From positions 37,247 to 101,246 of the forward strand of contig CDRNVI010000189.1 of the NCBI GenBank assembly GCA_977017575.1: a DNA stretch of 64,000 nucleotides, read 5' to 3'. Origin of the DNA: Paramoeba atlantica. Taxonomy: Eukaryota > Protista > Discosea. Shown one piece after another: positions 14,293 through 36,212 of the stretch. Numbering within the stretch: position 1 is the first letter of the stretch; each line of letters opens with the position of its first letter. Under the pieces are notes generated by a model. It did no database searches. It saw only the letters and a program-made list of their open reading frames with translations, and was not told the origin of the DNA. Both the position numbers and the translations under genes were made by a program.

Positions 14293-17200
14293 ATGAAAAA
14301 TGCATTTGGTGGCCATAAAGATTACATGGAAGAGAAGAAGCGAAAATTAGATCAACAATTCCAAAGTCGTTTTTCTGATGACCCTTCTTCTTGTTCGATC
14401 CTCTCAGCGAAGGATCTTTCGAAAGAAAGTTCAATTCAGTTTTGATTCTCTCTTTTTTTTTTTCAATTGGAAAAGATTGGAGAGAGAACCAAAAAAGGAG
14501 TTGATCATTTATTTTTGATAATTTTCTTTTTTCTTTCTTTTGAAAGAGATGGAATCTTCAGAGGAGTTCATGTTTACATTACTGGGTTTACTGATCCGCC
14601 CCTCCCTGAGCTTCAAAGTTTACTTGGTTCTCTTTCCTCTTTTCTTTCTTCTTTCCTCTTCCTCTTCTGTTCTGTTCTCAGTTTAATCGATGAAATACAG
14701 GGAAAAATGGTGGAAAACATGAACAATATTTATCAAAGAGAGTAACACACATTGTTGCTTCAAATTTGCCTCTAACAAAAGTCAAAGAATGGAAAAAGAA
14801 AGGGTTATTTTTTTCTCTTGAAAGGAGCGAGAGAAAGAGAAAAAGAGATGAGATAGATGTTGATAATCAATATCAGAATTCGTCAGTTGAAAATTGTTTC
14901 TCCTCACTGGTTGGTTCATTCCGTGGAGCAAGGCCGTCTCCTCCCTTGGATTCAATATGATTTGTTTAAATCATTACAAGTATTCATTCTCTTTCCTTTC
15001 GTTTTTCTGATTCTTATTATTCTTCTGGGGATTCTTTTTTGTTTAATTTTTGTTTGAACAAAGAGAGGTGGAGAATTCTCAACAGGAGTATCGTCACTTT
15101 ATCGAGTCGAGGCATCAACCAAATCCTATCTCAAACCATTTAATCCGCAAACTGATCTTGATTCTTCATTTATTCGAAAGGAAAGTCAGGAAAGGGGAGA
15201 AGAAAGAACAGAAATCAAAGAACGGGAACAAAATCAAGAAAAAGAACGAGAAAACAAACCACAGAAGAAAAGAGAGGAACAACAAAATAGATTCGAACAA
15301 AAAACAACAGAAAAAAAGAAAGAAACCCAGACGACAATCAAGAAAACTATCAAACAAAACCCTCCACAAAAGATGAAACAGATTCCAAACCCAAGTCTTA
15401 CAGCAGTGGATGATGACTTTATCAAAAATTATTATAACCATTCCCGGTTACATCATCTTTCAACTTGGAAACAAAAGTTTAGAGATGAGATGGCGAAGAT
15501 GGTAGAAGCAGAGACGAGACTTTATTATGATCCAAGTATTGCTTCGACTACATCAACAACAAACCCTTCAACAACAACATCAACAACATCAACAACATCA
15601 TCATCAACAACAAAGAAGACTCGACTTATTTGCCATCTCGATTTCGATTGTTTCTTTGCGTCAGTGGCGATGAGATATCAACCTGCATTATATGGAAGGC
15701 CAGTGGCTGTTTGCCATTCTACTTCTCGTTCTTCTACTTCTACTTCTCAGATTGCTTGTGTTAATTATGTTGGGAGAAAGTTTGGATTGAGGAATGGGAT
15801 GTTTGTTGCTGAGGTATGGTTCTATTCCATTTTTCGAAGATTTTTGTTTTGTTTTATTCTTGTTCTTGCTCTAAAAATGAAATGTAAATTAAAATCCCCT
15901 CCTCTCTAAACCTTCCTTTTCTATTTTATCTCTTTTTAGGCTTTCAAGAAATGTCCAGAACTTGAAGTTGTTCCTTATCAGTTTCCGAAATATGAAAAAA
16001 TTTCAACGATGTTTTATCGATTTTTATTAAAATATTCCAAAAAAATCCAAGTTGTGAGGTTTTCTATTCTTTTCTTTCAAGCAATGAAGATTAATTTAAT
16101 TAGTTAGTCAATTAATTTATTTTTTATTAAATGTAGTGTTTTCAATTATATTTTCTGTTTGAAACTAACCTTTGTTCTCTCCCTCTTTATCAACCAATAG
16201 TTGTGATGAAGCCCTGATAGATATCACGGGATGTGAGAATCCAGAGGCGCTTGTTTTAAAAATAAGAGAAGAAGTGTTTCAAAATTGTGGTTGTAATTTG
16301 AGTTGTGGGATTGGAACAAGTATTCTTGTTGCCAGGATGGCTTGTCGGTTTTTCTTTTCATTCCTTCATCATCTCTCTTTTTCTTCCTTTTTTCTCTCTT
16401 TTTTCTCTCTCATCGCGATTCCTCCATTTTGTGTCTTTAGAAAAGCAAAACCAAATGGACAAAAATTGGTGTTGCTTGATCAAACAGATGAATTTGTTGC
16501 ATCAATGCCAATCTCTTCTCTTCCTGGTTAACTTTCAAGAACTTATTTTATGGAAATTCGATTTTCTGAATAATTAACAAATTTGATTTCAGGTGTTGGG
16601 AGAAATATACTCAAAAAAATCGAGAAATTAGTTTCGCCTCAAATCCAGAGTTGTAAAGATCTTCGAAGTATCCCAAAAAATGTTCTTCAAACTCATTTTG
16701 GAAAAAAAGTGGGGGAAGGTTTGTGGGGAATGTGTCGGGGAATCGATGAGAGAGAGATTGTTACTGGTTCTTTTTCTTTTGAATTCTTTTCTCTTTCTTT
16801 TTTCTGATTTTGGGTCTTTTTATTTTTTAAAAACCTTTTTTTTTCAGATTGGTCTCGAAAATCAATTGGAGCAGAAGTAAATTGGGGGATGAGATTCACT
16901 GAACAAAAAGAAGTCACAAACTTTCTCAAGCAACTCGTCACAGAAGTCGTCTCCAGAATGAGAGAGTCACGTGTTGCTGGTCTTCGAGTGACCATAAAAG
17001 TTAAGAAAGCAAAGAGAGAAGGAGATGGGGAGAGAGGAAGGGGAAAAAGGAAAGAAAAGGAACGTGGAAAGAATTTGGAAGAAGAGGAAGAAGAAGCAGA
17101 AGAGGAAAAAGAGGAAGAAGACGAGATCGATGCAGAAGAAAGAGGGGAGAGAAAAATTATCCAGCCATACAAATATCTAGGACATGGACCGTGTCATAAT

Positions 17201-18658
17201 TACAGCAAATCAATGACACTCCCCCAATTCACAAACACAGAAAAAGTAATCTTTTCGACGAGTAATATTTTGTTAACTGAGTTAAAAATCTTGCCTGTGG
17301 AGTTGAGAGGGTTGGGAGTTCATATGAGTAATTTAATTACTGTTTCTGAGTTGAGCGGTTTTTCTGGGGAGGAAGGAGGAAGAGAAGAGGGGAATGAGGA
17401 AGAGAGAAGAGGCGGAAAGAGGCATCAGTCGACGATTTTTGAGAAATTACTGGAGAAACAAAAGGATCGTGAAAAAGAAGAAGAAAAGGAAAGAGAAGAA
17501 AGAAGGAAAGGAAAGAGGGAGGTGGGAGATTCTTCAAGTGGGGAGGTGAAACAAATGAATATTGATGCTATTGAAGGAGGGGATGGTTCTCGATTCTCCG
17601 AAGGTGCTTGTTTTGTTCCTCCTCCGACCTTATCTCAACTTGATCCAACGGTGATTGATGTCCTCCCGGAAGATATTCGGAGAGAGATTGATAGAGAATA
17701 CGGAAGGTCAACAGAGGAGAGAGAAGGCGACAATGAAGATGATCATCTGAGTTCTCTTGTCCATTTTGTTGATTTGCCTAATTTCTCTCAACTTGATGAA
17801 AGTGTTTTGGGGATGCTTCCTTGTGGATTACGGAAAGAAATTGACATCGAATATTGGAAAAGAAAGAAGAACAAGAAGAGGGAAAGAGTGATTGAGGGGC
17901 AATTGTTCTTAGAAGATCGGAACCCGCCAAAGAAAGCCAGACAACAAACACTTCGTGAGACTGGATGTCGAGCTTATGCACAAGAAGGGGATGATTTTGT
18001 TCTTCCAATTGCACATAAGATCCAAAAAGAATTCGATGTGGAGATGCTGTTGACCTTAAGTCCTTCGCTTATCACAGAGACACTTGAGGGAATGGGTTAT
18101 CAACGCCAGGATATCTCTGATATTTTGAAATTGAAACACAGGCAAGTGGATCAGACAGATATTCAACAACCACACACCCCTCTTCAGCGATTTTCCCCGG
18201 TTCAACATCGATCACCAGATAGAGCTCAACAACAACAACAACAACCACAACCTCAACTTCAAAGAAACCAACAACCAATCCCACAATTAATCCAACACCA
18301 CCAACAAATTACACAACAGCAACATCCCACCCCTTCAAACAGAACAATTATCAAGCATGCGCCATCATCACTTCTCTTCTTTCACAGTGAACCAATAGAT
18401 TTCGAATTTCGTGCCACAGTCAAGAAATGGATGGGAAAGACTCTCCATCCCTCTCCTCTCCAACAAACAATGCTCTCTCTTTTCTTACAACAACTTGTAT
18501 TTGAGGGAAACTTGGAGGGTTTGCAATTTATGGTTCGGTTTCTCTCTCATTTTGCAGAGGATAAATTTCCACAATGGAAGAGTACTGTTGCGAAAGTTGT
18601 TCAGGATGTACAGGAGGCAGTTGTTTCAGTGTTTGGTGGTTCCCTTTTGGTGACTTGA
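14293..18658 (+). CDS. REV1: Y-family translesion polymerase / dCMP transferase REV1 (multi-exon)
   Basis: FGGHKDYMEEKKRKL N-terminus; BRCT (IFRGVHVYITG..THIVASNL..WLVHSV); SRLHHLSTW; HLDFDCFF; S|CDEA; GHGPCHNYSKS; two UBM-like repeats (SQLDPTVIDVLPEDIRREI, SQLDESVLGMLPCGLRKEI); C-terminal domain ending in TGA. Confidence 0.95.
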
Positions 18659-24874: not shown

Positions 24875-27800
24875 CCAAACACTCACAAAACAACAATAAT
24901 AATAAATAAATAAATAATAGAAAAAACAAAACAAAAGACCACGCGCAAGTCTCGTTCTCCCAGGTGGCCAAATTCTTGGAGAAGAAGAAGAACTCGAAAA
25001 TATTGAGATTGAAGCTCTTGAAGATGAGAGAGAGAGAGGAGAGAGAGAGAGAGATTTTGTGAAAGAGCATGATCCTGATGTTCATTTGATTGATCCAAAG
25101 ATTTCTGTGGAGCTTGAAACGTTCTATTTGGAACGATATGGTTTATTTGGATTTTTTTCTTTTTTCTTTCTTTTTTCTTTCTTGTTTTTTATTATTATTT
25201 TTTATTATTATTATTTCCTTTTTATTATTATTTACTTTATTTATTATTATTAATGTTTCCTGATCTATTCTTCCATTCCCCCTTCCAAAAAACCCTCTCA
25301 TCTTCTTCTTCTCCCTCTCCAAAAGGCCTCCTCGGGCTCACCCCAGACGAAATAATGCAATCACCCTCCCTAGGCCAAGCACTCCTAACCCGTACATCAA
25401 GAAACCCAAACCAAACCATCCTCGTTTGGATTGGTACAAAAGGAAATGAAGAAGAAAGTATTACAATTGGGGAGTTGGTTCGAAATGCGAAGTTGATTTG
25501 GGATGAGATGAAGAAGAAAGGGATCAAGAAGGGGGATCATGTTGCTTTGTGTTTTGCGCCGTGTTTGTTGTTTGCTCAGGCGTTTTTTGCCTGTGTTTTT
25601 GCAGGTTTTTTTATTTTTTGTTACAATCTTTCTTTCTTTTTGTTTTTGAAAATTAAATTTTTTTTCCCTTTTTTAATCTTATTTTCTAACTTACAAATAA
25701 ACTAATTTTTTTAAATCTTTAAATTAAAAAAAAATACAAAATAGGAGTTGTATGTGTCCCAGTATACCCACCAGAACCATCCGCAGCGTTCACAGTCACA
25801 AGATTTATAAATATTTGTCGAGATGCCGAGTGTAAATTGATTCTTTCTCACTTTATGTGTACTTCTAGAATTGAAAAAGTTGTTGATTTGGGACTTGGGA
25901 CTACGGGAGGAGAGAAAGGAGAGAAAGGGGAGAAAGAGGAGAAAGGAGAGAAAGGAGAGAAAGGAGAGAAAGGGGAAGGAGAAGAAAAAGGAGAAAAGAA
26001 AAACAAAGGATCAAACGGATTAGATCAATTCCAATGGTTAAATACCGATTTTGTCAAAGAAAAAAGGGAAGAAAGTTTTGATTTTGATTTTGAAATTGAG
26101 TCACAAAATCATGATTCGCTTTGTTTTTTGCAATTTACGAGTGGGTCCACTGGCTTTCCAAAAGGGGTTATGGTTCGCCATTTGGGGATTTTGTTGGAGT
26201 GTGTCTATTTGCCACCAGCTCGTTGTCACGCGCTTTGGCTTCCTCATGTTCATGATCTTGGTATGGCTCTAAATTTTTTGTTTATTTTATTTTATTGATT
26301 TTTCTTTTCTTTTCTTTTATTTTGTAAAAAAAAGGTGTTTAATTTTTTTTTTTCATAAATAGGGTTGCTTTGTTTAATTCAGGGGGTATTAATGAGCCAT
26401 AGAACATACTTAATGAGTCCTGTGACGTTTGTTCGAGCTCCTCCACTTTGGGTTTTTTTGTCAAGTGAAATTCGAGCGAATCAAATGATTGGTCCTAATT
26501 TTGCATTTGAGTTGTGTGCATTGAAGTTTCCACGTGAGGTTTGTTGTTGGATATCAGAATTATTATTTTTCTTTCTTTTCAGTCTAGAACTTTTTTGAAA
26601 AATTGTTCTCTTTTTTTTTATTCAATTTAATTCTAAAAATTAAACACTCGTTACAACAGGGACTAGACAAAATTGACCTCTCATCAATCCAATACGTCAC
26701 AAACGGAGGCGAACCAATGAAAAAAACAACAATCGATTTATTCACCAAAACATTCAGAAATTGTGGATTCATCGAAACAGGATTTGTAAATGGGATTGGG
26801 ATTGCTGAATTTACTCTTGCTTTGACATATCAACAAGCCACATACACTGAAATTATTATTGATGTTGCAGAATATAAGAAGAATGTTGTTGTTCCTGTTG
26901 GTAGTGGTGGTGGTTCTGGGGGTTCTGGGGGGGCGTTGAATTGTCTTTCTTTGATTGGTGCCACTCTTCATCCTGGTATTTTTTTATTATTTATTTTTAT
27001 TTATTTTTATTGATATTTATTTATTTTTATTTTTTTAAATTTTTATTATTGAATTTTATTTAAAAATTTTATTCAAATTTTTGACAACAAAATCTCTTCT
27101 GATTTTCCCCCTTCTCTTTCTTCTCTCTCTCCCTTCCAGATGTGACATCCGCAGTAGTCGATCCCGAAACAAAACAACGAGTCCAATCAGAACACCATAT
27201 CGGAGAAATATGGCTCCAAGGACCGACAATGACAAAAGGATATTATTTACAAGAACAAAAAACGGAAGAGACTTTTCGAGCCAAGATTTTGGGGGAAGAA
27301 GAGAGGGGTTGTTGGTTGAGGACTGGTGATTTGGGGTTTGTTATTGGGAGGAAGATTTATCTTTCTGGCAGATATAAGGTTTTTTTTGTTTTTTTGTTTT
27401 TGTTTTGTTTTTTTTGTTTTGTTTTTTTTTCTTTTTTGTTTGTTTTTTTTTTCTTTATTTTGATTATTTTATCTCTCTCTTCCTTATCTCTTCATAAAAA
27501 TAATTCTTTTCTTTTTCGTAGGATGTAATCATATTAAAAGGACAAAATTTCCACGCTGTAGATATTGAAGAAGTTACAAGAGCAGCTTCACCAGCCATTC
27601 GTCCTGGTTGTGTCTCTGCCTTTCATTTTACTCATAAAAGTTTTGATTGTGTTGGGATTGTTGCGGAGGTTTGTCTCTTCTTTCTCTCTCTCTTTCTTTT
27701 TTCTCTTTCTAAATTTTTTTTTGATTATTTTTTATTGCTTGTTCTCATTTTTGTCTGTGATAGGTGAAAAATGATCAAGCAGACGAAGCAGAATTAGAAC

Positions 27801-28033
27801 TTATTTGTCAGACAATCCAAACGGCATTGGCAACAAACATGGGAATCATTGTAAATCTCATTGTTTTAATTAAATGTCGCAGTATCCCTAAGACAACGAG
27901 TGGGAAATTGCAAAGAAGTTTGGCAAAGAAAATGTATTTTGAAAAGAAATTAAAGATTTTGTTTGAGAGGGAGTTGTATGATGAGGAAGAGGAAGATGAT
28001 GAAGATGATGAAGATGAGGAAGAAGAGGAATAA
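19030..28033 (+). CDS. Large multi-exon fusion: degenerate G-alpha-like domain, TKL pseudokinase, 5 ACP-like repeats, fatty acyl-AMP ligase
   Basis: GVKGSGKKT P-loop; ILFFTGYDLFKKKI; HPTITSFFGV..VMEYMEGGDL; WTAPEVL; GILLWEL; repeats such as ELGLSSLQMVGLQDAISKEFGV; LQFTSGSTGFPKGV; GPNFAFEL; GEIWLQG; LRTGDLG; IPKTTSGKLQR. Phase-compatible GT-AG introns were found at the junctions checked, including TGG|gt ~24788 to ag|AAA 24920. That this is a single transcript is inferred. Confidence 0.72.
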
Positions 28034-28145
28034 AAAAGAAAGGAATAGAAAAGTTTTTGGTTTCAAGACTGTAAAGTGAAATTATTATTTTTATTTTTAT
28101 TTTTTTGATTTTGAAATCTTAAGAGAGAGGGAGAAAGGAAAAAAA

Positions 28146-28222
28146 GAATAAAATTTTCACATCAACAAAATATCTCCAAAAATATTTCAGTTTTGATATT
28201 CTGTCTCATCATCTTCTCATTT
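28146..28222 (-). promoter_or_regulatory. SECIS element (type II), deiodinase copy 1
   Basis: Minus strand reads ATGA GACAGAATATC AAAA CTGAAA TAT TTTTGG A GATATTTTGTT GAT: AUGA/GA core, 11-bp helix II, AAAA bulge and apical mini-stem. Identical to the copy 2 element. Confidence 0.88.
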
Positions 28223-28347
28223 TCCAATTCTCCCTTTCAATCTCTTTTTCTCTTTTTCAATCAAACAAAAAAAGATCTTCTCTCTCTTTTCTCTTCTCTT
28301 CTTTCTTCTCTCTTCTTCTTTAATCTTCAATATTGTTTTCTTCTTTG

Positions 28348-29022
28348 TTAATTCTTTTTGAAATCTTTGATCCATTGTTTAAGAGAAGAAAGAGAATAAT
28401 GAAAAGGACCAACACCACCAACATAAACAATCTTACGATCTAAAACAACATACAATCGTTCAGGAAGAGCAGAAAACATCAAATCAACTCGGTTGTCCAT
28501 CAAATCAACAACCAATGGCCCTTCAACTTGATACTTTTCTTGAAATTCAAACGCAAGTTTCACTCTTTCTTCCATTGTTCGAGGTTGACAAAACGTAATC
28601 TCTGAATGGACATGCCATTCATCAATTGGATGAGCTTCTGAAATGTAAATGGTCACAAAATCAATCGATTTTTCAAATTCAATCACCAAGTTCCCAAAAT
28701 TTGCGATCTTGGCTGCGAATGGACCTCAGCTCATCGATCCGAAATTCAACACAAGAGGTCGATCTTTCTTCCCAAAAGTTTCAAATAATCTCACGTTTTG
28801 TTTTGATTTTGGGTCATACACTTCGATATCTTCTTCTCCAATTTCCATTCCAACACTCCAAGGGAACTGGTTTCTCGCTTCCAAGTTCAGAAGAAACCCT
28901 TTCATCTTCTCTTGATCCGTTTCGACTCGTTTGTCATTCTCTCGGCGGGGACAGGTCACTGATGGGTGATCTGCTTCGCAATAGAGGCATTGGCCTCCAC
29001 AATCGAGGTCTGGTAAACTCAT
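28348..29022 (-). CDS. DIO: Iodothyronine deiodinase-like selenoprotein, copy 1 (224 aa, Sec at codon 99)
   Basis: ORFs 28726..29022 and 28348..28689 are in one frame, separated only by TGA at 28726-28728. Reads RPLVLNFGSMS-U-GPF, then IYISEAHPIDEW, VDLMDN, ALPERLYVV and YVGGVGPFHY (DIO hallmarks). SECIS downstream. Confidence 0.92.
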
Positions 29023-29319
29023 TTCTCCCCTTTCTCAAGAAGAGGAAGAGAGAGGAAGAGAGAGGGGAGCAAACTGAAAACAGAAAACAAAAAATTGTTC
29101 TCACTACGAATCGAAATGGGGTATTTTCATTTTTATTATTTATTATTATTGTGCGAAAATAAAATATTAATTTTTTTTGAAAACCTGATAAAAAATCGAC
29201 TTGTTTTTGTGTTTTTTGTGGAGAGGAAAAAGAGTGCGAAGAGACAAGAAAAAAAGAAGAAAATAGCTTGAGAGATAAGAGATTCATTTCCTTCAGTTCA
29301 CTCATACAATCACGACCAC

Positions 29320-30075
29320 TTATGCCATCTGAAAAGTATAGAACTCGTCATCAGATGTAATGTCAAGATCGAGTATCTTGCACTTATTCGAGAAATCGGT
29401 GGGTGTTCCTTGAGGAAAGGGGGCCAGCTCCGGGAAACTACATTCCATATCAGGGTCATCCTCACCACAAAGCTCCGATTGATATTCGATTGTGACATCA
29501 CATGGGGAATCATCTGCGCAAGTGTAAAGAGTACAACCTGCGGGGTAATCATAAAGGCCTTGTGTTGCTTCAGTAATCTCAAGGAAAGGCTTGGACACTT
29601 CGATTGGTTTGCAGCCGCTATCTTGTGCGATGTCGTTGTAATAATCGGCTGAAAGAGAATGTTACTTTCAAGATCCATTTACAATGACGAAAAAAAAAAA
29701 AAGGAAGAGAAAAGAGAAAAGAAATATCCAACCAAATTCTTGAGTCACAAAGGCTAGGGCAGTTCTTTGGATAGAGAGAGTATGATTCAATAGAAAGCGC
29801 CAGTTTTGGTGGATTTGAACAAAATCAAGATTAGAAGTACCCACAATGACAACCTGCTCATTTTGCCATTTTGTATTGATTTTGCAACCTTCACATGGGT
29901 CAATATCCTTATTCTCTTCACGACCTTGACAAACACCACGAGAACGGGACGCTTCTTGATGGGGTAAAAGGGACCTGAACGAGAGGACCTCTTTCATACG
30001 GGAACGAATATCTTGTTCAGCCAAAGCAACCGCTGTGCAAAGGACAAAAAACAAAAGCAAAGACAAAGACTTCAT
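29320..30075 (-). CDS. Hypothetical secreted Cys-containing protein (2 exons)
   Basis: Signal peptide MKSLSLLLFFVLCTAVALA; a phase-1 intron joins QEF|ADYYND to ORF 29320..29598. No family recognised. Confidence 0.65.
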
Positions 30076-30389
30076 CGTACTTTGACAAGGAACTATGACA
30101 AAAGAAAGGTATGGGGTTGTTGTTGTTTGCAGGAGAGGAAAAAATAAAAACAACGTCAGGTGCAGTTCTTTTCGGGACAGGAGGAAAAAGAAAAGAAATT
30201 TCGCAATTGGGCCCTATTTTAAAAAAGGAAAGTCAAACGAATAGTTTTTGGGTCCGGAAAAACTTTTTTTTCTTTATGTTTAAAAAAAATTAGGTTTTTC
30301 GTTCTCCGAGGTGGATGGCACAACGGAAAACAAAAATGAGAAACACACACCAAATAGAGTTCATTTGAAATTTTTTGATTTTTTTTGTT

Positions 30390-31721
30390 TCATTTTTTTG
30401 GGCTATCGTTGAGGGGAATAGTACAAAGAACAGGATAATGATCAGAAGGATAAAAGCCATCTCTCCCTTCAAAGGTGACAACTCCAACCCAATCACAAAT
30501 TGTCATATCAGTATTTTCCCTCTCTCTTTGTAAAATCCAATCAATGTGCAAATCTTGAGGGAACAATGGAAAAGGGAAAGAACCAGGAGATATCAAATGG
30601 AGAAATGAGGTGAAAGTTCCCAACAAAGTTCTTTCATAAAAAGAAGAAAATTTGAGCCCAGAAAATCCATGAAAGGTTGTCGTTGTTGAAGCACATCTTT
30701 CAATATCCCCACCAGAATTATTATTCCCACCTCCAACCCACACATCCCTCCATTTTCCAAGTCCATCCAACCCCTTTCTTTCATCATGATCTTTGCTATT
30801 CGAATTTGAGAAGAGGATTTGGTGGATATCAGAGAGTCCAGATACTAATAAAGAGTGAGAATTTCCTCCTCGAACCGTATTAAAATCACCAGTTAAGAAA
30901 ACTCTTTCATTTGAAGGAGTTGGTAACATTTTTTCGATTTGTTTCGCGAGAAAGAACGTCTGCTGCATTCTTCCAAGCTCTGAAAAAGGATCGAGATGTG
31001 TATTGAAAACGTAAAAGGAGAAAGTAGGAGAAGAAAGAGAAGTAAATTTTCCCCATGTGCAAGATCGATGGAACCTTGCATTGGGAGAGAGAGACTGTTT
31101 GTGAGGAGTGGGAGAGAGAAAAAAGACTCCCGAGTCAATCATTTTGAGAGTTTGGGGATTGTACATGATTCCACTTTGTTCTTCTCCTCTTTGAAAGTAC
31201 GAGCGATAAGAGAGTGATTTGGCCAAAAAAGTGATGCTTCCTAAAATCAAAAGTCAAAAATAAAAAAAAGAAAAGAAAAAGAAAAGAAAAAGAAAAGAGA
31301 AAAGAAGTTTTCTTTTAATTTACAAACCATATTCTCCTTCTTGAAAACCAACAAAATCAGGACGAGTGGAACGAAGTAAATCAAGAGCTCTCTCTCTTCT
31401 CCCATTCAACCAATCATTCTGCGATCCGTCAACAATCCCTGCCCCTCTCATGTTATAACTCATAATTTTAAGAGAGGAATGAGGGAGAGAATGTCGAGGA
31501 GAACAATCTTGGTTTCGAGATGGTGTTGGAGGAGAAGAGAGAGAAAAGAGAAAAGAAGCGAAGATGAGACAAAGTATCAGAAAGAGAAGCGATCGGTAAT
31601 ACTTTTTTCGAAAAAGAGAAAGAAACAAGAAAATGAGAGGGGTGAAAATGAGAAGGAGGGCTGTGTTCCAAATGAGACCAATTCCCAATTTTTGGGTTCC
31701 TCTGATGATTATCTCGTTCAT
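30390..31721 (-). CDS. Endonuclease/exonuclease/phosphatase (EEP) family protein with N-terminal TM helices (2 exons)
   Basis: LKIMSYNMR, DFVGFQE, VFNTHLD, LTGDFN, HIDWIL and YPSDHYPV are the EEP catalytic motifs; hydrophobic N-terminus. Confidence 0.88.
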
Positions 31722-32305
31722 TTCTCTCTTTTTACTCTTTTATGTTTTGTACTCAGAAAAGAAAGGAAGATCAACTCCAGAACAAACTCGAAAAACAAAG
31801 TGGTAACGAAAAAAGAGGCTAGACTAAAACAAAGAAAGAATCCCAATGACAATCCCATCCACAAAACAAGTCGAAAAAAAAAGAAAAAACCAAAAAAGAA
31901 AAAACCAAAAAAGAGAGAGACGAAAAGAGGAAAGAGAAAACACGTGTTGGCTTTCCCCCAAAAATGAAACGGGATTTCAATGAAACGAAACACGATTTTC
32001 TTAGGTGAAAGAATTAGGGAAATAACTCTCACTCTTGTCTTATTTTCATTTCTTTTCTTCTCTTTTTCTCCTTTTTTTCTTCTATCTTCTTCACTCCTTT
32101 TTTCTTGCAACAAAAAAACGCAAAAAACAAGTCGATTTTTTTCGGGTATTCAAAAAAAAATTAATATTTTATTTTCACACAACAACAATAAATAATGAAA
32201 ATGAAAATACCCCATTTCGATTCGTAGTGAGAACAATTTTCTGTTTTCGGTTTGGCTCTTTTCCTCTCTCTTCCTCTCTCTTCCTCTTCTTGAGAAAGGG
32301 GAGAA

Positions 32306-32980
32306 ATGAGTTTACCAGACCTCGATTGTGGAGGCCAATGCCTCTATTGCGAAGCAGATCACCCATCAGTGACCTGTCCCCGCCGAGAGAATGACAAACG
32401 AGTCGAAACGGATCAAGAGAAGATGACTGAACACTTGAAGCTGGTCCAGTCTCGAAACCAGTTCCCTTGGAGTGTTGGAATGGAAATTGGAGAAGAAGAT
32501 ATCGAAGTGTATGACCCAAAATCAAAACAAAACGTGAGATTGTTTGAAACTTTTGGGAAGAAAGATCGACCTCTTGTGTTGAATTTCGGATCGATGAGCT
32601 GAGGTCCATTCGCAGCCAAGATCGCAAACTTTGGGAACTTGGTGATTGAATTTGAAAAATCGATTGATTTTGTGACCATTTACATTTCAGAAGCTCATCC
32701 AATCGATGAATGGCATGTCCATTCAGAGATTACGTTTTGTCAACCTCGAACAATGGAAGAAAGAGTGAAACTTGCGTTTGAATTTCAAGAAAAGTATCAA
32801 GTTGAAGGGCCATTGGTTGTTGATTTGATGGACAATCGAGTTGATTTGATGTTTTCTGCTCTTCCTGAACGATTGTATGTTGTTTTGGATCGTAAGATTG
32901 TTTATGTTGGTGGTGTTGGTCCTTTTCATTATTCTCTTTCTTCTCTTAAACAATGGATCAAAGATTTCAAAAAGAATTAA
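32306..32980 (+). CDS. DIO: Iodothyronine deiodinase-like selenoprotein, copy 2 (224 aa, Sec at codon 99)
   Basis: ORFs 32306..32602 and 32639..32980 are in one frame (offset 333 nt) with TGA at 32600-32602 in NFGSMS-U-GPF. Same DIO motifs as copy 1; SECIS downstream. Confidence 0.92.
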
Positions 32981-33150
32981 CAAAGAAGAAAACAATATTG
33001 AAGACTAAAGAAGAGAAAGAGAAGAGAGAAGAGAAGAGAAAAGAGAGAGAAGATAGAAGAAAGAGGAAAGAAGAGAGAAGATCTTTTTTTGTTTGATTGA
33101 AAAAGAGAAAAAGAGATTGAAAGGGAGTTCAGAGGAAGAGAGAATTGGAA

Positions 33151-33227
33151 AATGAGAAGATGATGAGACAGAATATCAAAACTGAAATATTTTTGGAGAT
33201 ATTTTGTTGATGTGAAAATTTTATTCT
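33151..33227 (+). promoter_or_regulatory. SECIS element (type II), deiodinase copy 2
   Basis: ATGA at 33163-33166. GACAGAATATC (33167-33177) pairs with GATATTTTGTT (33198-33208), followed by GA at 33209-33210. AAAA at 33178-33181. Mini-stem CTGAAA/TTTTGG. Helix I AATGAGA/TTTTATT. Confidence 0.9.
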
Positions 33228-33810
33228 TTTTTTCCTTTCTCCCTCTCTCTTTTCGAGACTCCAAAACTGGCATTTCCAAAATCAAAATAATAATTTCACT
33301 TTACAATCTTGAAACCAAAAACTGTTCTATTCCTTTCTTTTTTATTCCTCTTCTTCCTCATCTTCATCATCTTCACTCATCAGACAACTCCCTCTCAAAC
33401 AAAATCTTCAATTTCATCGAGATCTTCAACTTCGCGAGATTCTTTTCGATAATTTAAAAAAAAAACGATCACAAATCGAAAAACGCGTTCTTTTCTCTAT
33501 CCTTTTTCGAGTTGTGACACAAGGGGTCACAAAGACAGGAAGAAAACTCCAAAAAGAAATGGAACATTCTCAAACCAACCAGAAATTTCATTCCTTTGGA
33601 TAAGAGATCTCGATGGCCGCAAAATCGAGAAAAGAGAACAGAAAATTCGGGAATAAAAAGACCCAAAAAAAAGGGAACAGAAAAGAAAACCATTTCCAAA
33701 AATCCTTTTTCTGTTTTTCTCCAAAGCAGAAATTTTTAAATTTTTGCGGTTTTTATTTTTTGGTTTCGTTTCTTGCGCACAATTTTTCTTTTCTTTTGTG
33801 GTGGTCGAGG

Positions 33811-36212
33811 ATGTTATTTCGATTGGTTTTGGTCTTTCTTTTCTGCGCTCGTTGGTCTGTGGGAGAGCGACAATATTGCCATCCTGGTGAAGATTGCTGG
33901 CCTTCATCTGATGAAGTCCAAAAACTTGTGAATTCTCTTGATCCATCCGCTCCTCGTTTTTACTACTGGCAAGGTATCTTTCCTCTTTGAACGATTCTTT
34001 TTTGGATGACGCAACTTCAAACAAAACTTGAGAGATGAGAGAGAGAGAGAGAGAGAGAGAGATTGAAGAGAGAGATTGAAGAGAGAAAAAGAGGGGTTGT
34101 GTTGGTTGGTGTTGATTAGGGTTGGTTTTGAATGAATACTTATTTTTTTTCTCTCTCTTTTTCATCAGGTCCAGGATATCGACGTGTTGGTCCAACTCCA
34201 ATTTTCAGCCCTAATCACCAACCACTCTTTGGACTTGGAGAACAATCAATGGATCCTCTTTATCAACCATCTGGTGATGATTTCAATACTCCTTGTTTTG
34301 CTCCCACTCCATCATCACCACCACGACTTTCCAAGGATTCCCCTTCTCTCCCATTTGGATCTTCTTCTTCTTCTTTCTCTCCATCTTCTTCTTCTTCTCT
34401 TTATGATGAGATGGATTTGAGTTCTGAAATATCAGGATTTTATGGTTCAGATTATTGTCGTGCATCAACTCGAAACAATCCATTGAATGGATCTGTTCCA
34501 GCGTTTGTTGTTTGGCCTCTCACCGTTCAACATATTCAAACATTAATCCAGTTTGCAAATGATCATGATCTTTGTGTTTCAGTTGCTGGTTTCTTTTTTC
34601 TTTTTTCTTTCTTCTCTTTTCTTTTCTTTTCTTCTCTTTTCTTGTAAAATTGAATTCTCAAAAAAGAAATAAATTAAAAATGACAAAAAAAAATAGGAAC
34701 TGGACATGACTACCTGAACAGACACAGTTGTGAAGATTCTCTTTTCATTCGAATGGGACTTTTTAAAGATATTGAATGGGTTGATGGTGATCAAAACCAC
34801 TTGCGAATTGGTCCTGGAAACGTGTTTGATGAACTTCAAGCTTTTGCTATCACTCGTAATCGTTATATTGCGAGTGGTTGGGTTAAGTTTTGTGTCTTTC
34901 ATTTTTACATTTTATTTTCGATTTATTTTCGATTTATTTTCGATTTATTTTCAATTTATTTCTCTTTTATTTCTCTTTTCTTTTTTTCTTTTGGGTTTTT
35001 TTTTTTCTTTTGGGTTTTTTTCTCAAATTTTTCTTCCAATATCAGCACTGTTGGGATTGTGGGTTGGAGTATTGGAGGAGGACATGGTCCTTTTGCTCCT
35101 TCTGCTGGTCTTGGTGTTGATAATGTTGTTGAGGTTTCTTTTTTATCTTCTCTCTCTCAAATCTCTCTTACCTACCACCACTCCCCCTCTCACCCTCTCC
35201 TCTCTTCTTTTTTTTTGTTTTTGTGAGGTTTCTTAAAAACGATAATGATTGATTGTTTTTGAAAAAGGTGGAAATGATCACCGCTGCTGGTGATGTTCTT
35301 GTTGCAAACTCCCAACAAAATACTGATGTGTACTGGGCACTTCGTGGTGGAGGAGGATCAACTTGGGGAATTATCACATCAATCACAGTTCGAACTCACG
35401 AAAACCCTGCAGAAGGTGTCACAACATCTGCTTCAGTGTGGAGTGGGACCTTTTGTGAACGAGGACCAAACAATTTGGGTTTCTTTGAAAAACTGATTAC
35501 TGAGTACATTCAATGGACCCTTGATAAAGACACACGTTGGGGAGGATATGCGTACTTCATTACTCGAAAAAGCGATTCTACTGCATCATGTGGAGTGAAT
35601 TGGTTTAGTTGGATCAACTATGTTTTCCAAGGAGCTGAGACTGATCCTGAATTTCAATACGCTTTGAATAATTTGAGTGCTATTGGTGGAATTCATGAAA
35701 CCAATACCTCTCATTGGGACAGCTGGGCCCAGAGACTTGAAATCGAAAGAGTCGACCCAATCTATCCTGTTGAAGCTTGGCCAATTATTCCTGGAGATAC
35801 TGTTGGTGGGATTCCTTCAACGACTGTAACTCGTGAATTTGCAACAAATGGAACTCTCGCTGAATATGTGATTGGTCAGGTGATGCAATGTAAAACAACA
35901 GGAAGATGTGGGTTTCAGCAGTTGTATCAAGATATCACTGGAAATATTGGATCTCAACAACCACAAAATGTCTCAATTTCAGAGGGAATGAGATCTGATC
36001 TTTTTCATTATGCTCTCGATTTTACAACAACCCAAAAGCAACTTCAGGAGGCTTTGCGTTTGGGTCGTGGTGCTTATTTTAGTGAAAGTGCGCTCGAAAT
36101 GCCCAACTATGAGGAAGTCTATTGGGGTGAGAAGAATTACAAGACTTTGAGGGAGATCAAAAAGAAAATTGACCCAACTCAACGTTTTTGGTGTCGCCAT
36201 TGCGTTCAATAA
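33811..36212 (+). CDS. Secreted FAD-linked oxidoreductase (PCMH FAD-binding plus BBE domain), copy 1 (multi-exon)
   Basis: Signal peptide; CHPGEDCWPS; VA|GTGHDYLNR (covalent-FAD His motif); TVGIVGWSIGGGHG; WALRGGGGSTWGI; GAYFSE..YWG..Y..L..IKKKIDP. Confidence 0.9.

Follow-up and report, generated by a model that had tools for sequence, protein, structure and literature searches.

Two probable selenoprotein genes of the deiodinase family

A stretch of 64,000 nucleotides (nt) from the amoeba Paramoeba atlantica (GenBank assembly GCA_977017575.1, contig CDRNVI010000189.1, positions 37,247 to 101,246 of the forward strand; hereafter the window, in whose own numbering positions are given) was found to carry two copies of a gene that are very probably genuine selenoprotein genes of the iodothyronine deiodinase family, with selenocysteine (Sec) at residue 99; the insertion of Sec itself we infer. 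The open reading frame (ORF) listing gives the same layout for both loci, which are mirror images of each other (copies A and B, Table 1): 98 amino acids (aa) are followed by a TGA and then by an in-frame continuation of 125 aa that ends in a TAA. The two TGA positions named in an initial annotation of the window are exact to the base in this listing, and its expectation that automated annotation would split the genes also held, the existing gene calls for each locus being two products of 98 and 112 aa. Throughout the analysis, the 98-aa N piece and the 125-aa C piece were used as separate queries.

Deiodinase similarity lies on both sides of the TGA, since the N and C pieces match the Pfam family T4_deiodinase (PF00837) collinearly. 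The N pieces match it weakly (E 0.018 and 0.034, 14.8 bits, profile positions 72-112 and 82-112), and the C pieces pass the curated cutoff of 27 bits (E 1.5e-28, 100.2 bits, profile positions 116-234); the protein is assigned by Pfam to this family and not to AhpC/TSA or Redoxin. Among known structures, the C piece matches mouse Dio2 (9H48, E 5.4e-20) and Dio3 (4TR3, E 1.5e-19), the latter over residues 59-179 and beginning with the second residue of the piece. A single N piece had no match in the PDB; a profile of seven N pieces was required, which aligned with residues 15-56 of 4TR3 (E 2.9e-5). The N-piece profile thus stops at residue 56 of the Dio3 chain and the C piece resumes at residue 59, and, as no gap interrupts the match to either profile or structure, the position of the TGA is that of the catalytic Sec (residue 57 of the 4TR3 chain), as stated in the initial annotation. 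The family signature FGS-x-[TS]-U-x-P-F at the start of helix 1 is present as FGSMS-TGA-GPF.

SECIS-like elements in the 3′ untranslated regions

Past the stop codon of each copy lies a hairpin that resembles a eukaryotic Sec insertion sequence (SECIS) element. It is composed of a 5′ AUGA, an 11-bp helix II (nine Watson-Crick and two G-U pairs), an unpaired AAAA, a 6-bp mini-stem, the complementary arm and UGAU. RNAfold returned the same helix II and mini-stem in the minimum free energy and the centroid structures, together with a lower helix I in which positions 33147-33152 pair with 33230-33235. The AUGA/GA quartet, a helix II of about 11-12 bp, the unpaired AA and helix I, all of them features of eukaryotic SECIS elements, were recovered by the pattern scan and RNAfold. 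The core starts 182 nt past the TAA and 560 nt past the UGA in copy B, and 138 nt and 516 nt past them, respectively, in copy A.

The scan used a pattern of our own (NUGA, a paired arm of 10-13 nt, AA or CC, a loop, the complementary arm and GA). Only two matches were obtained in the whole window (128 kb on both strands), both in sense orientation in the 3′ untranslated regions (UTRs) of the two genes and both with 11 of 11 pairs. First-order Markov shuffles gave a mean of 1.72 matches per window; we estimate at about 0.003 the chance that such a match would fall within 250 nt of a particular stop codon. The hairpin regions of the two copies are 99% identical, and the spacer between TAA and hairpin carries indels of 29 nt and 15 nt; the hairpin has been kept while its spacer has changed, which indicates that it is under sequence constraint. 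In the mechanism that we propose, the ribosome would read UGA99 as Sec through this type-II SECIS hairpin in the 3′ UTR, and the hairpin would, by analogy with other eukaryotes, recruit SBP2, eEFSec and Sec-tRNA.

Conservation of the TGA codon between copies and among relatives

The coding sequences of the two copies show five isolated differences, all of which are synonymous transitions, and four of the five lie downstream of the TGA. As the expected share of synonymous changes among random transitions is 0.34, five out of five correspond to p ~0.004. Isolated changes that are only synonymous, and mostly past the TGA, imply that the region after the TGA is under coding constraint.

Searched exhaustively with HMMER, the C piece yielded 1666 matches (E<=0.001), the best of them at 48-51% identity. 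Most of these matches are fragments of 110-130 aa that start just past the catalytic site, and full-length matches show at that site either W, the TGA having been translated under another code, or C. In a word-indexed homologue search, the C piece retrieved only the window's own pieces and three fragments, and the N piece retrieved nothing beyond the window; a profile of N pieces added only one fragment from MMETSP0161. Among the near relatives (L003-L009; seven loci, six of them distinct, as L006 and L007 are near-identical), the TGA occupies the same codon in all seven. SECIS-like hairpins, chosen with the same pattern as the window elements, were detected past the stop codon in five of these seven loci. 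Related loci from Joint Genome Institute (JGI) metagenomes, 80 in total, have a TGA at the catalytic codon in every one of the 75 that could be scored. These loci (L010-L089) are mostly anchored and mostly from soil, several of them lying on contigs of 10-193 kb. They probably represent a large selenoprotein clade, prokaryotic by the look of the long contigs, in which SECIS elements of the bacterial type would be expected.

One near relative, L008, is a transcript of MMETSP0161_2 (identical to the eukprot fragment CAMPEP_0201538820), which we take to be Neoparamoeba aestuarina. Its 3′ UTR contains two tandem, near-identical SECIS-like hairpins (909-962 and 1001-1052 of the transcript) for a single UGA. 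Another relative, the metagenome contig L004, carries tandem deiodinase-like selenoprotein genes (45-674 and 841-981 of the contig), with a SECIS-like hairpin in the 166-nt spacer between them.

Genetic code, expression and proposed Sec decoding in the host

The function of TGA elsewhere in the window was examined at the gene for REV1, whose ORF (16889-18658) terminates in TGA three residues past the REV1_C domain. As TGA terminates REV1 normally, the recoding in the deiodinase-like genes is site-specific. The initial annotation had described TGA as an ordinary stop in the rest of the window and the two loci as Sec-encoding genes of the deiodinase family with site-specific recoding; this description is supported by the SECIS-like elements, the synonymous drift between the copies, the TGA in the relatives and the normal stop of REV1.

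Five public runs hold the region. In one of them (X1, probably RNA, its type not being recorded), a 743-nt contig spans 28324-29035 and thereby the whole coding sequence of copy A, with no gap and with the TGA unchanged. Contigs of the same run on the neighboring gene end at 31241 and 31327, which are the borders of a GT-AG intron, and nothing was found in the intergenic stretches; because the contigs stop exactly at the intron borders, we argue that X1 is RNA. The 743-nt contig has the 27-nt block that distinguishes copy A (see below) but the bases of copy B at four of the five variable sites, which suggests a strain difference or an exchange between the copies.

Several points weigh against the selenoprotein interpretation and have to be set beside this evidence. 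That X1 is RNA, however probable, is a guess from exon-limited coverage. Its contig ends at the deiodinase-like gene coincide with low-complexity repeats, as they do in the DNA-like run X2, and ends that are set by repeats carry no information on transcript ends or on the linkage of UGA and SECIS element in one transcript. ARAGORN detected no tRNA in the 64-kb window. No gene of the Sec machinery has been assigned to the host, which would possess this machinery judging from the present genes and from other Amoebozoa, namely Dictyostelium (PMC2375036) and Acanthamoeba (PMC8038987), where it is present. Finally, the Rfam model SECIS_1 was silent on both elements even at E<=10, in searches of 27500-34000 and 33100-33260 that returned only weak look-alikes of microRNAs and C/D-box small nucleolar RNAs (snoRNAs). 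This negative result is weak evidence, because SECIS_1 also misses or under-scores the elements of the relatives, among whose loci only L006 reaches the model, with 22.3 bits against a cutoff of 35. The weak C/D-box matches fall on the hairpins themselves, at 33152-33236 and 28137-28219 (SNORD25, 18.2 bits; snoR31, 19.4 bits), and presumably fit the kink-turn with UGAUGA…UGA that is common to both RNA classes.

It could be argued that the TGAs are true stops and that the loci are pseudogenes or split genes, yielding the 98-aa N piece and at most a further piece of 112 aa with its own start. The products proposed by the gene callers agree with such a view, as do the silence of Rfam on SECIS elements and a host machinery that is only inferred. 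We nevertheless regard it as highly improbable, since both copies and all near relatives have the same TGA at the catalytic codon, the sequence downstream of it has undergone only synonymous change, the SECIS-like hairpin is exactly conserved while its spacer decays, and neither piece alone makes up a complete thioredoxin fold. Even slighter is the chance that Trp or Cys, rather than Sec, is inserted at the UGA, be it by a variant code or by a near-cognate tRNA. Some database translations of relatives do give W at this position, other genetic codes having been applied, and kinetoplastid relatives with reassigned stops are described (PMC12153298). The DNA of the window, however, is eukaryotic and of amoeba type (spliceosomal introns, RasGAP, REV1 and ~36% GC) and not kinetoplastid. 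The TGA right after the C-terminal domain of REV1 also speaks against a general reassignment, and the site in question, which a known selenoenzyme family occupies with Sec or Cys, is accompanied by a SECIS-like element. Sec at residue 99 is therefore the reading that we retain for both genes.

Active site and possible chemistry

Compared with the Dio2 and Dio3 structures, the window protein keeps the Ser and, in the loop YI-x-EAHP-x-D-x-W, the Tyr, Glu, Trp and first His; the PERLY Arg, equivalent to Arg275, is likewise retained. The proton relay of deiodinases has been described as Ser, Thr, Tyr, Glu, His and His (PMC11592359). The Thr before Sec is replaced by Ser here. Two changes count against a deiodinase-type activity: the second proton-relay His (His219 of Dio3, His182 of Dio2) is Pro both here and in the protist relatives, and the accessory Cys residues of the vertebrate enzymes are lost, Cys168 of Dio3 being Met and Cys239 being Pro. 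With the relay His and the Cys residues replaced, deiodinase-type chemistry is not assured.

In the proposed reaction, the conserved scaffold (Ser-x-Ser-Sec, Tyr-x-x-Glu-x-His-Pro-x-x-x-Trp and the Arg of PERLY) would support a selenolate that most likely attacks a carbon-halogen bond reductively or, alternatively, a peroxide or a disulfide, and the enzyme would be re-reduced by thiols after the reaction. Judged from the sequence, a deiodinase-like dehalogenation may be the likeliest chemistry, somewhat ahead of a generic role as selenol oxidoreductase, and we consider the chances that it is the right one to be about even. The dehalogenase for a halo-aromatic substrate that the initial annotation proposed is thus conjectural, as is the Sec machinery that it ascribed to the protist. 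The alternative, possible but with a smaller share of our confidence, is that the genes are true selenoprotein genes whose product is a peroxiredoxin-like selenol oxidoreductase acting on peroxides or disulfides, the deiodinase fold having been reused in an enzyme that is no dehalogenase. The deiodinase fold is itself peroxiredoxin-like, and the Dio2 study notes insertions like those of alkyl hydroperoxide reductase (PMC11592359); moreover, amoebae are not known to have thyroid hormones (PMC2375036), soil metagenomes contain very many members of the family, on contigs of up to 193 kb and always with the TGA, and the missing second relay His and both missing accessory Cys residues fit the same alternative. 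On the other side stand the retention of the YI-x-EAHP-x-D-x-W loop, of the Ser-x-Ser/Thr-Sec motif and of the PERLY Arg, as well as the choice of T4_deiodinase by Pfam over AhpC/TSA and Redoxin.

N-terminal architecture

No membrane anchor was detected in the window protein by hydrophobicity: it has no hydrophobic segment, and its 19-residue Kyte-Doolittle maximum is 0.92, compared with 3.05 in the anchored relative L006. In the place of the animal deiodinase anchor, this presumably soluble protein has a Cys2-His-Cys motif that would probably bind zinc. The residues C12, C15, H19, C24 and P25 are invariant in an alignment of the window copies with L008 and the metagenome contig L003, in both of which the motif stands at the same place with an identity to the window N piece of only 24-46%. 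The spacing C-x2-C-x3-H-x4-C is one residue short of the canonical CCHC zinc knuckle (PF00098, C-x2-C-x4-H-x4-C), and L003 can be read with x4. Assignment to this knuckle class is disfavored by the x3 spacing and by the Pfam search of the N-terminal 40 aa, which gave no match at E<=10. A search with residues 1-45 in the Atlas gave no usable match.

One might speculate that L008 and L003 form, together with the window copies, an undescribed soluble branch of deiodinases, in which a zinc-binding knuckle takes the place of the anchor and binds the selenoenzyme to a partner, either a nucleic acid or a protein. The cellular role of such a branch would be unlike that of any deiodinase studied; it might, for example, lie in the handling of halogens or redox chemistry by marine paramoebid amoebae with a kinetoplastid endosymbiont. 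We think this rather unlikely as a whole.

Inverted duplication and neighboring genes

The duplication of the genes, also part of the initial annotation, is explained by the position of both copies in the arms of an inverted duplication (Table 1), and they are recently duplicated or gene-converted. Apart from the five isolated differences, their coding sequences are distinguished by a 27-nt block in which 21 of 27 bases differ between the copies, with identical flanks on either side. The block reads KGFLLNLEA in copy A and TEHLKLVQS in copy B. Since the version of copy B resembles the corresponding sequence of L008 (TPEHLK), the block of copy A looks derived. Both versions are also present in contigs from other runs, and inspection by eye revealed no convincing source of the block by inversion or template switch. 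As for the copies themselves, the outer end of the right arm is a relic of ~90-140 nt of the 3′ end of an acyl-AMP-ligase fusion gene, the intact end of which lies at 28033, so that copy B probably derives from copy A, which adjoins the intact gene.

Between the arms, a gene on the minus strand (30390-31721) contains one GT-AG intron of ~87 nt (31241-31327). The C-terminus of its product (…SDHYPV…) resembles, by eye, proteins of the endonuclease/exonuclease/phosphatase type, and no Pfam match was obtained for the product at E<=0.001. Two further ORFs on the minus strand (29310-30153) probably belong to one gene with an intron between them; their product, small and rich in Cys, begins with a sequence like a signal peptide (MKSLSLLLFFVLCTAVALA) and has no match in Pfam.

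Table 1. Positions in the window of the deiodinase-like genes and of the elements associated with them.
Feature	Positions	Strand	Details	Basis
Deiodinase-like selenoprotein gene, copy A	28348-29022	minus	intronless, 224 codons; ATG 29022-29020, Sec-TGA 28728-28726, TAA 28350-28348	ORFs, Pfam, translation
Deiodinase-like selenoprotein gene, copy B	32306-32980	plus	same gene, inverted; ATG 32306, Sec-TGA 32600-32602, TAA 32978-32980	ORFs, Pfam, contigs of public runs X2 and X3
In-frame UGA, copy A	28726-28728	minus	Sec99, motif FGSMS-U-GPF	ORFs, Pfam, Dio3 alignment
In-frame UGA, copy B	32600-32602	plus	Sec99, motif FGSMS-U-GPF	ORFs, Pfam, Dio3 alignment
SECIS-like element, copy A	28137-28225	minus	hairpin sequence identical to that of copy B	repeat I4 (99%), RNAfold, pattern scan
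SECIS-like element, copy B	33147-33235	plus	core AUGA at 33163, 3′ UGAU ends at 33210	RNAfold, pattern scan
Cys/His motif C12-x2-C15-x3-H19-x4-C24-P25, zinc-knuckle-like, copy A	28948-28989	minus		alignment, BLASTP
Cys/His motif, copy B	32339-32380	plus		alignment, BLASTP
Divergent 27-nt block, copy A	28875-28901	minus	codons 41-49; length and frame preserved	
Divergent 27-nt block, copy B	32427-32453	plus	codons 41-49; length and frame preserved	
Left arm of inverted duplication	27946-29220			repeat analysis, arm alignment
Right arm of inverted duplication	32111-33415		outer end (33278-33415) is the acyl-AMP-ligase relic	repeats I5 and I7, ORFs

Significance and comparison with known systems

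A Sec-containing deiodinase homologue in an amoeba has been known since the report on Dictyostelium in 2007, and what is added here is a correction of the annotation and possibly a new domain arrangement. Two split gene models are corrected, and a second amoebozoan lineage joins the organisms with homologues of Sec deiodinases; the selenoprotein reading also implies that the amoeba host operates a Sec-insertion system of its own. Our literature searches turned up neither a report of such genes from paramoebid amoebae nor one of a deiodinase with a Cys/His motif. The role of deiodinase-fold enzymes in organisms without thyroid hormones has been a standing question since the Dictyostelium report, and the anchor-less Cys/His form, a small and soluble protein that is probably easy to express with Sec mutated to Cys, may provide a model for the function of this fold in the absence of these hormones.

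The statement in the initial annotation that Dictyostelium has a Sec-containing deiodinase homologue agrees with the literature: Dictyostelium discoideum encodes such a protein with a type-II SECIS element and unpaired A's in the apical bulge, and thyroid hormone is not known there (PMC2375036, Lobanov et al. 2007). Compared by this published description, the genes in both amoebae code for amoebozoan Sec homologues of the thyroid-hormone deiodinases with type-II SECIS or SECIS-like elements. In the Dictyostelium SECIS elements, the core follows a conserved UGUA and the mini-stem is very long, whereas in the window element the core follows GAAG and the mini-stem has six pairs; in addition, the window gene forms an inverted pair, unlike the deiodinase-like gene of Dictyostelium.

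With vertebrate Dio1-3 (represented by 4TR3 for Dio3 and 9H48 for Dio2), the window protein has in common the fold, the active-site motif, the Sec residue and the equivalents of Ser, Tyr, Glu, His, Trp and Arg275. The vertebrate enzymes have an N-terminal membrane anchor where the window protein has the Cys/His motif, and their Thr before Sec, Cys168, His219 and Cys239 correspond to Ser, Met, Pro and Pro. The closest systems by architecture are L008 and L003, which share with the window genes the motif C-x2-C-x3/4-H-x4-C-P, the lack of an anchor, the TGA at the same codon, the variant QP-x-T-[LM]-EER and SECIS-like hairpins in the 3′ UTR, with an identity in the deiodinase domain of only 43-51%. 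L008 alone has an inserted loop past the first helix, a Ser/Pro-rich tail and its tandem pair of SECIS-like hairpins. The soil metagenome loci L010-L089 belong to the same family and have the same TGA, and they differ from the window genes by hydrophobic N-termini, by the active-site motif FGS[FY]T-U-PPF and by an identity of 33-43%.

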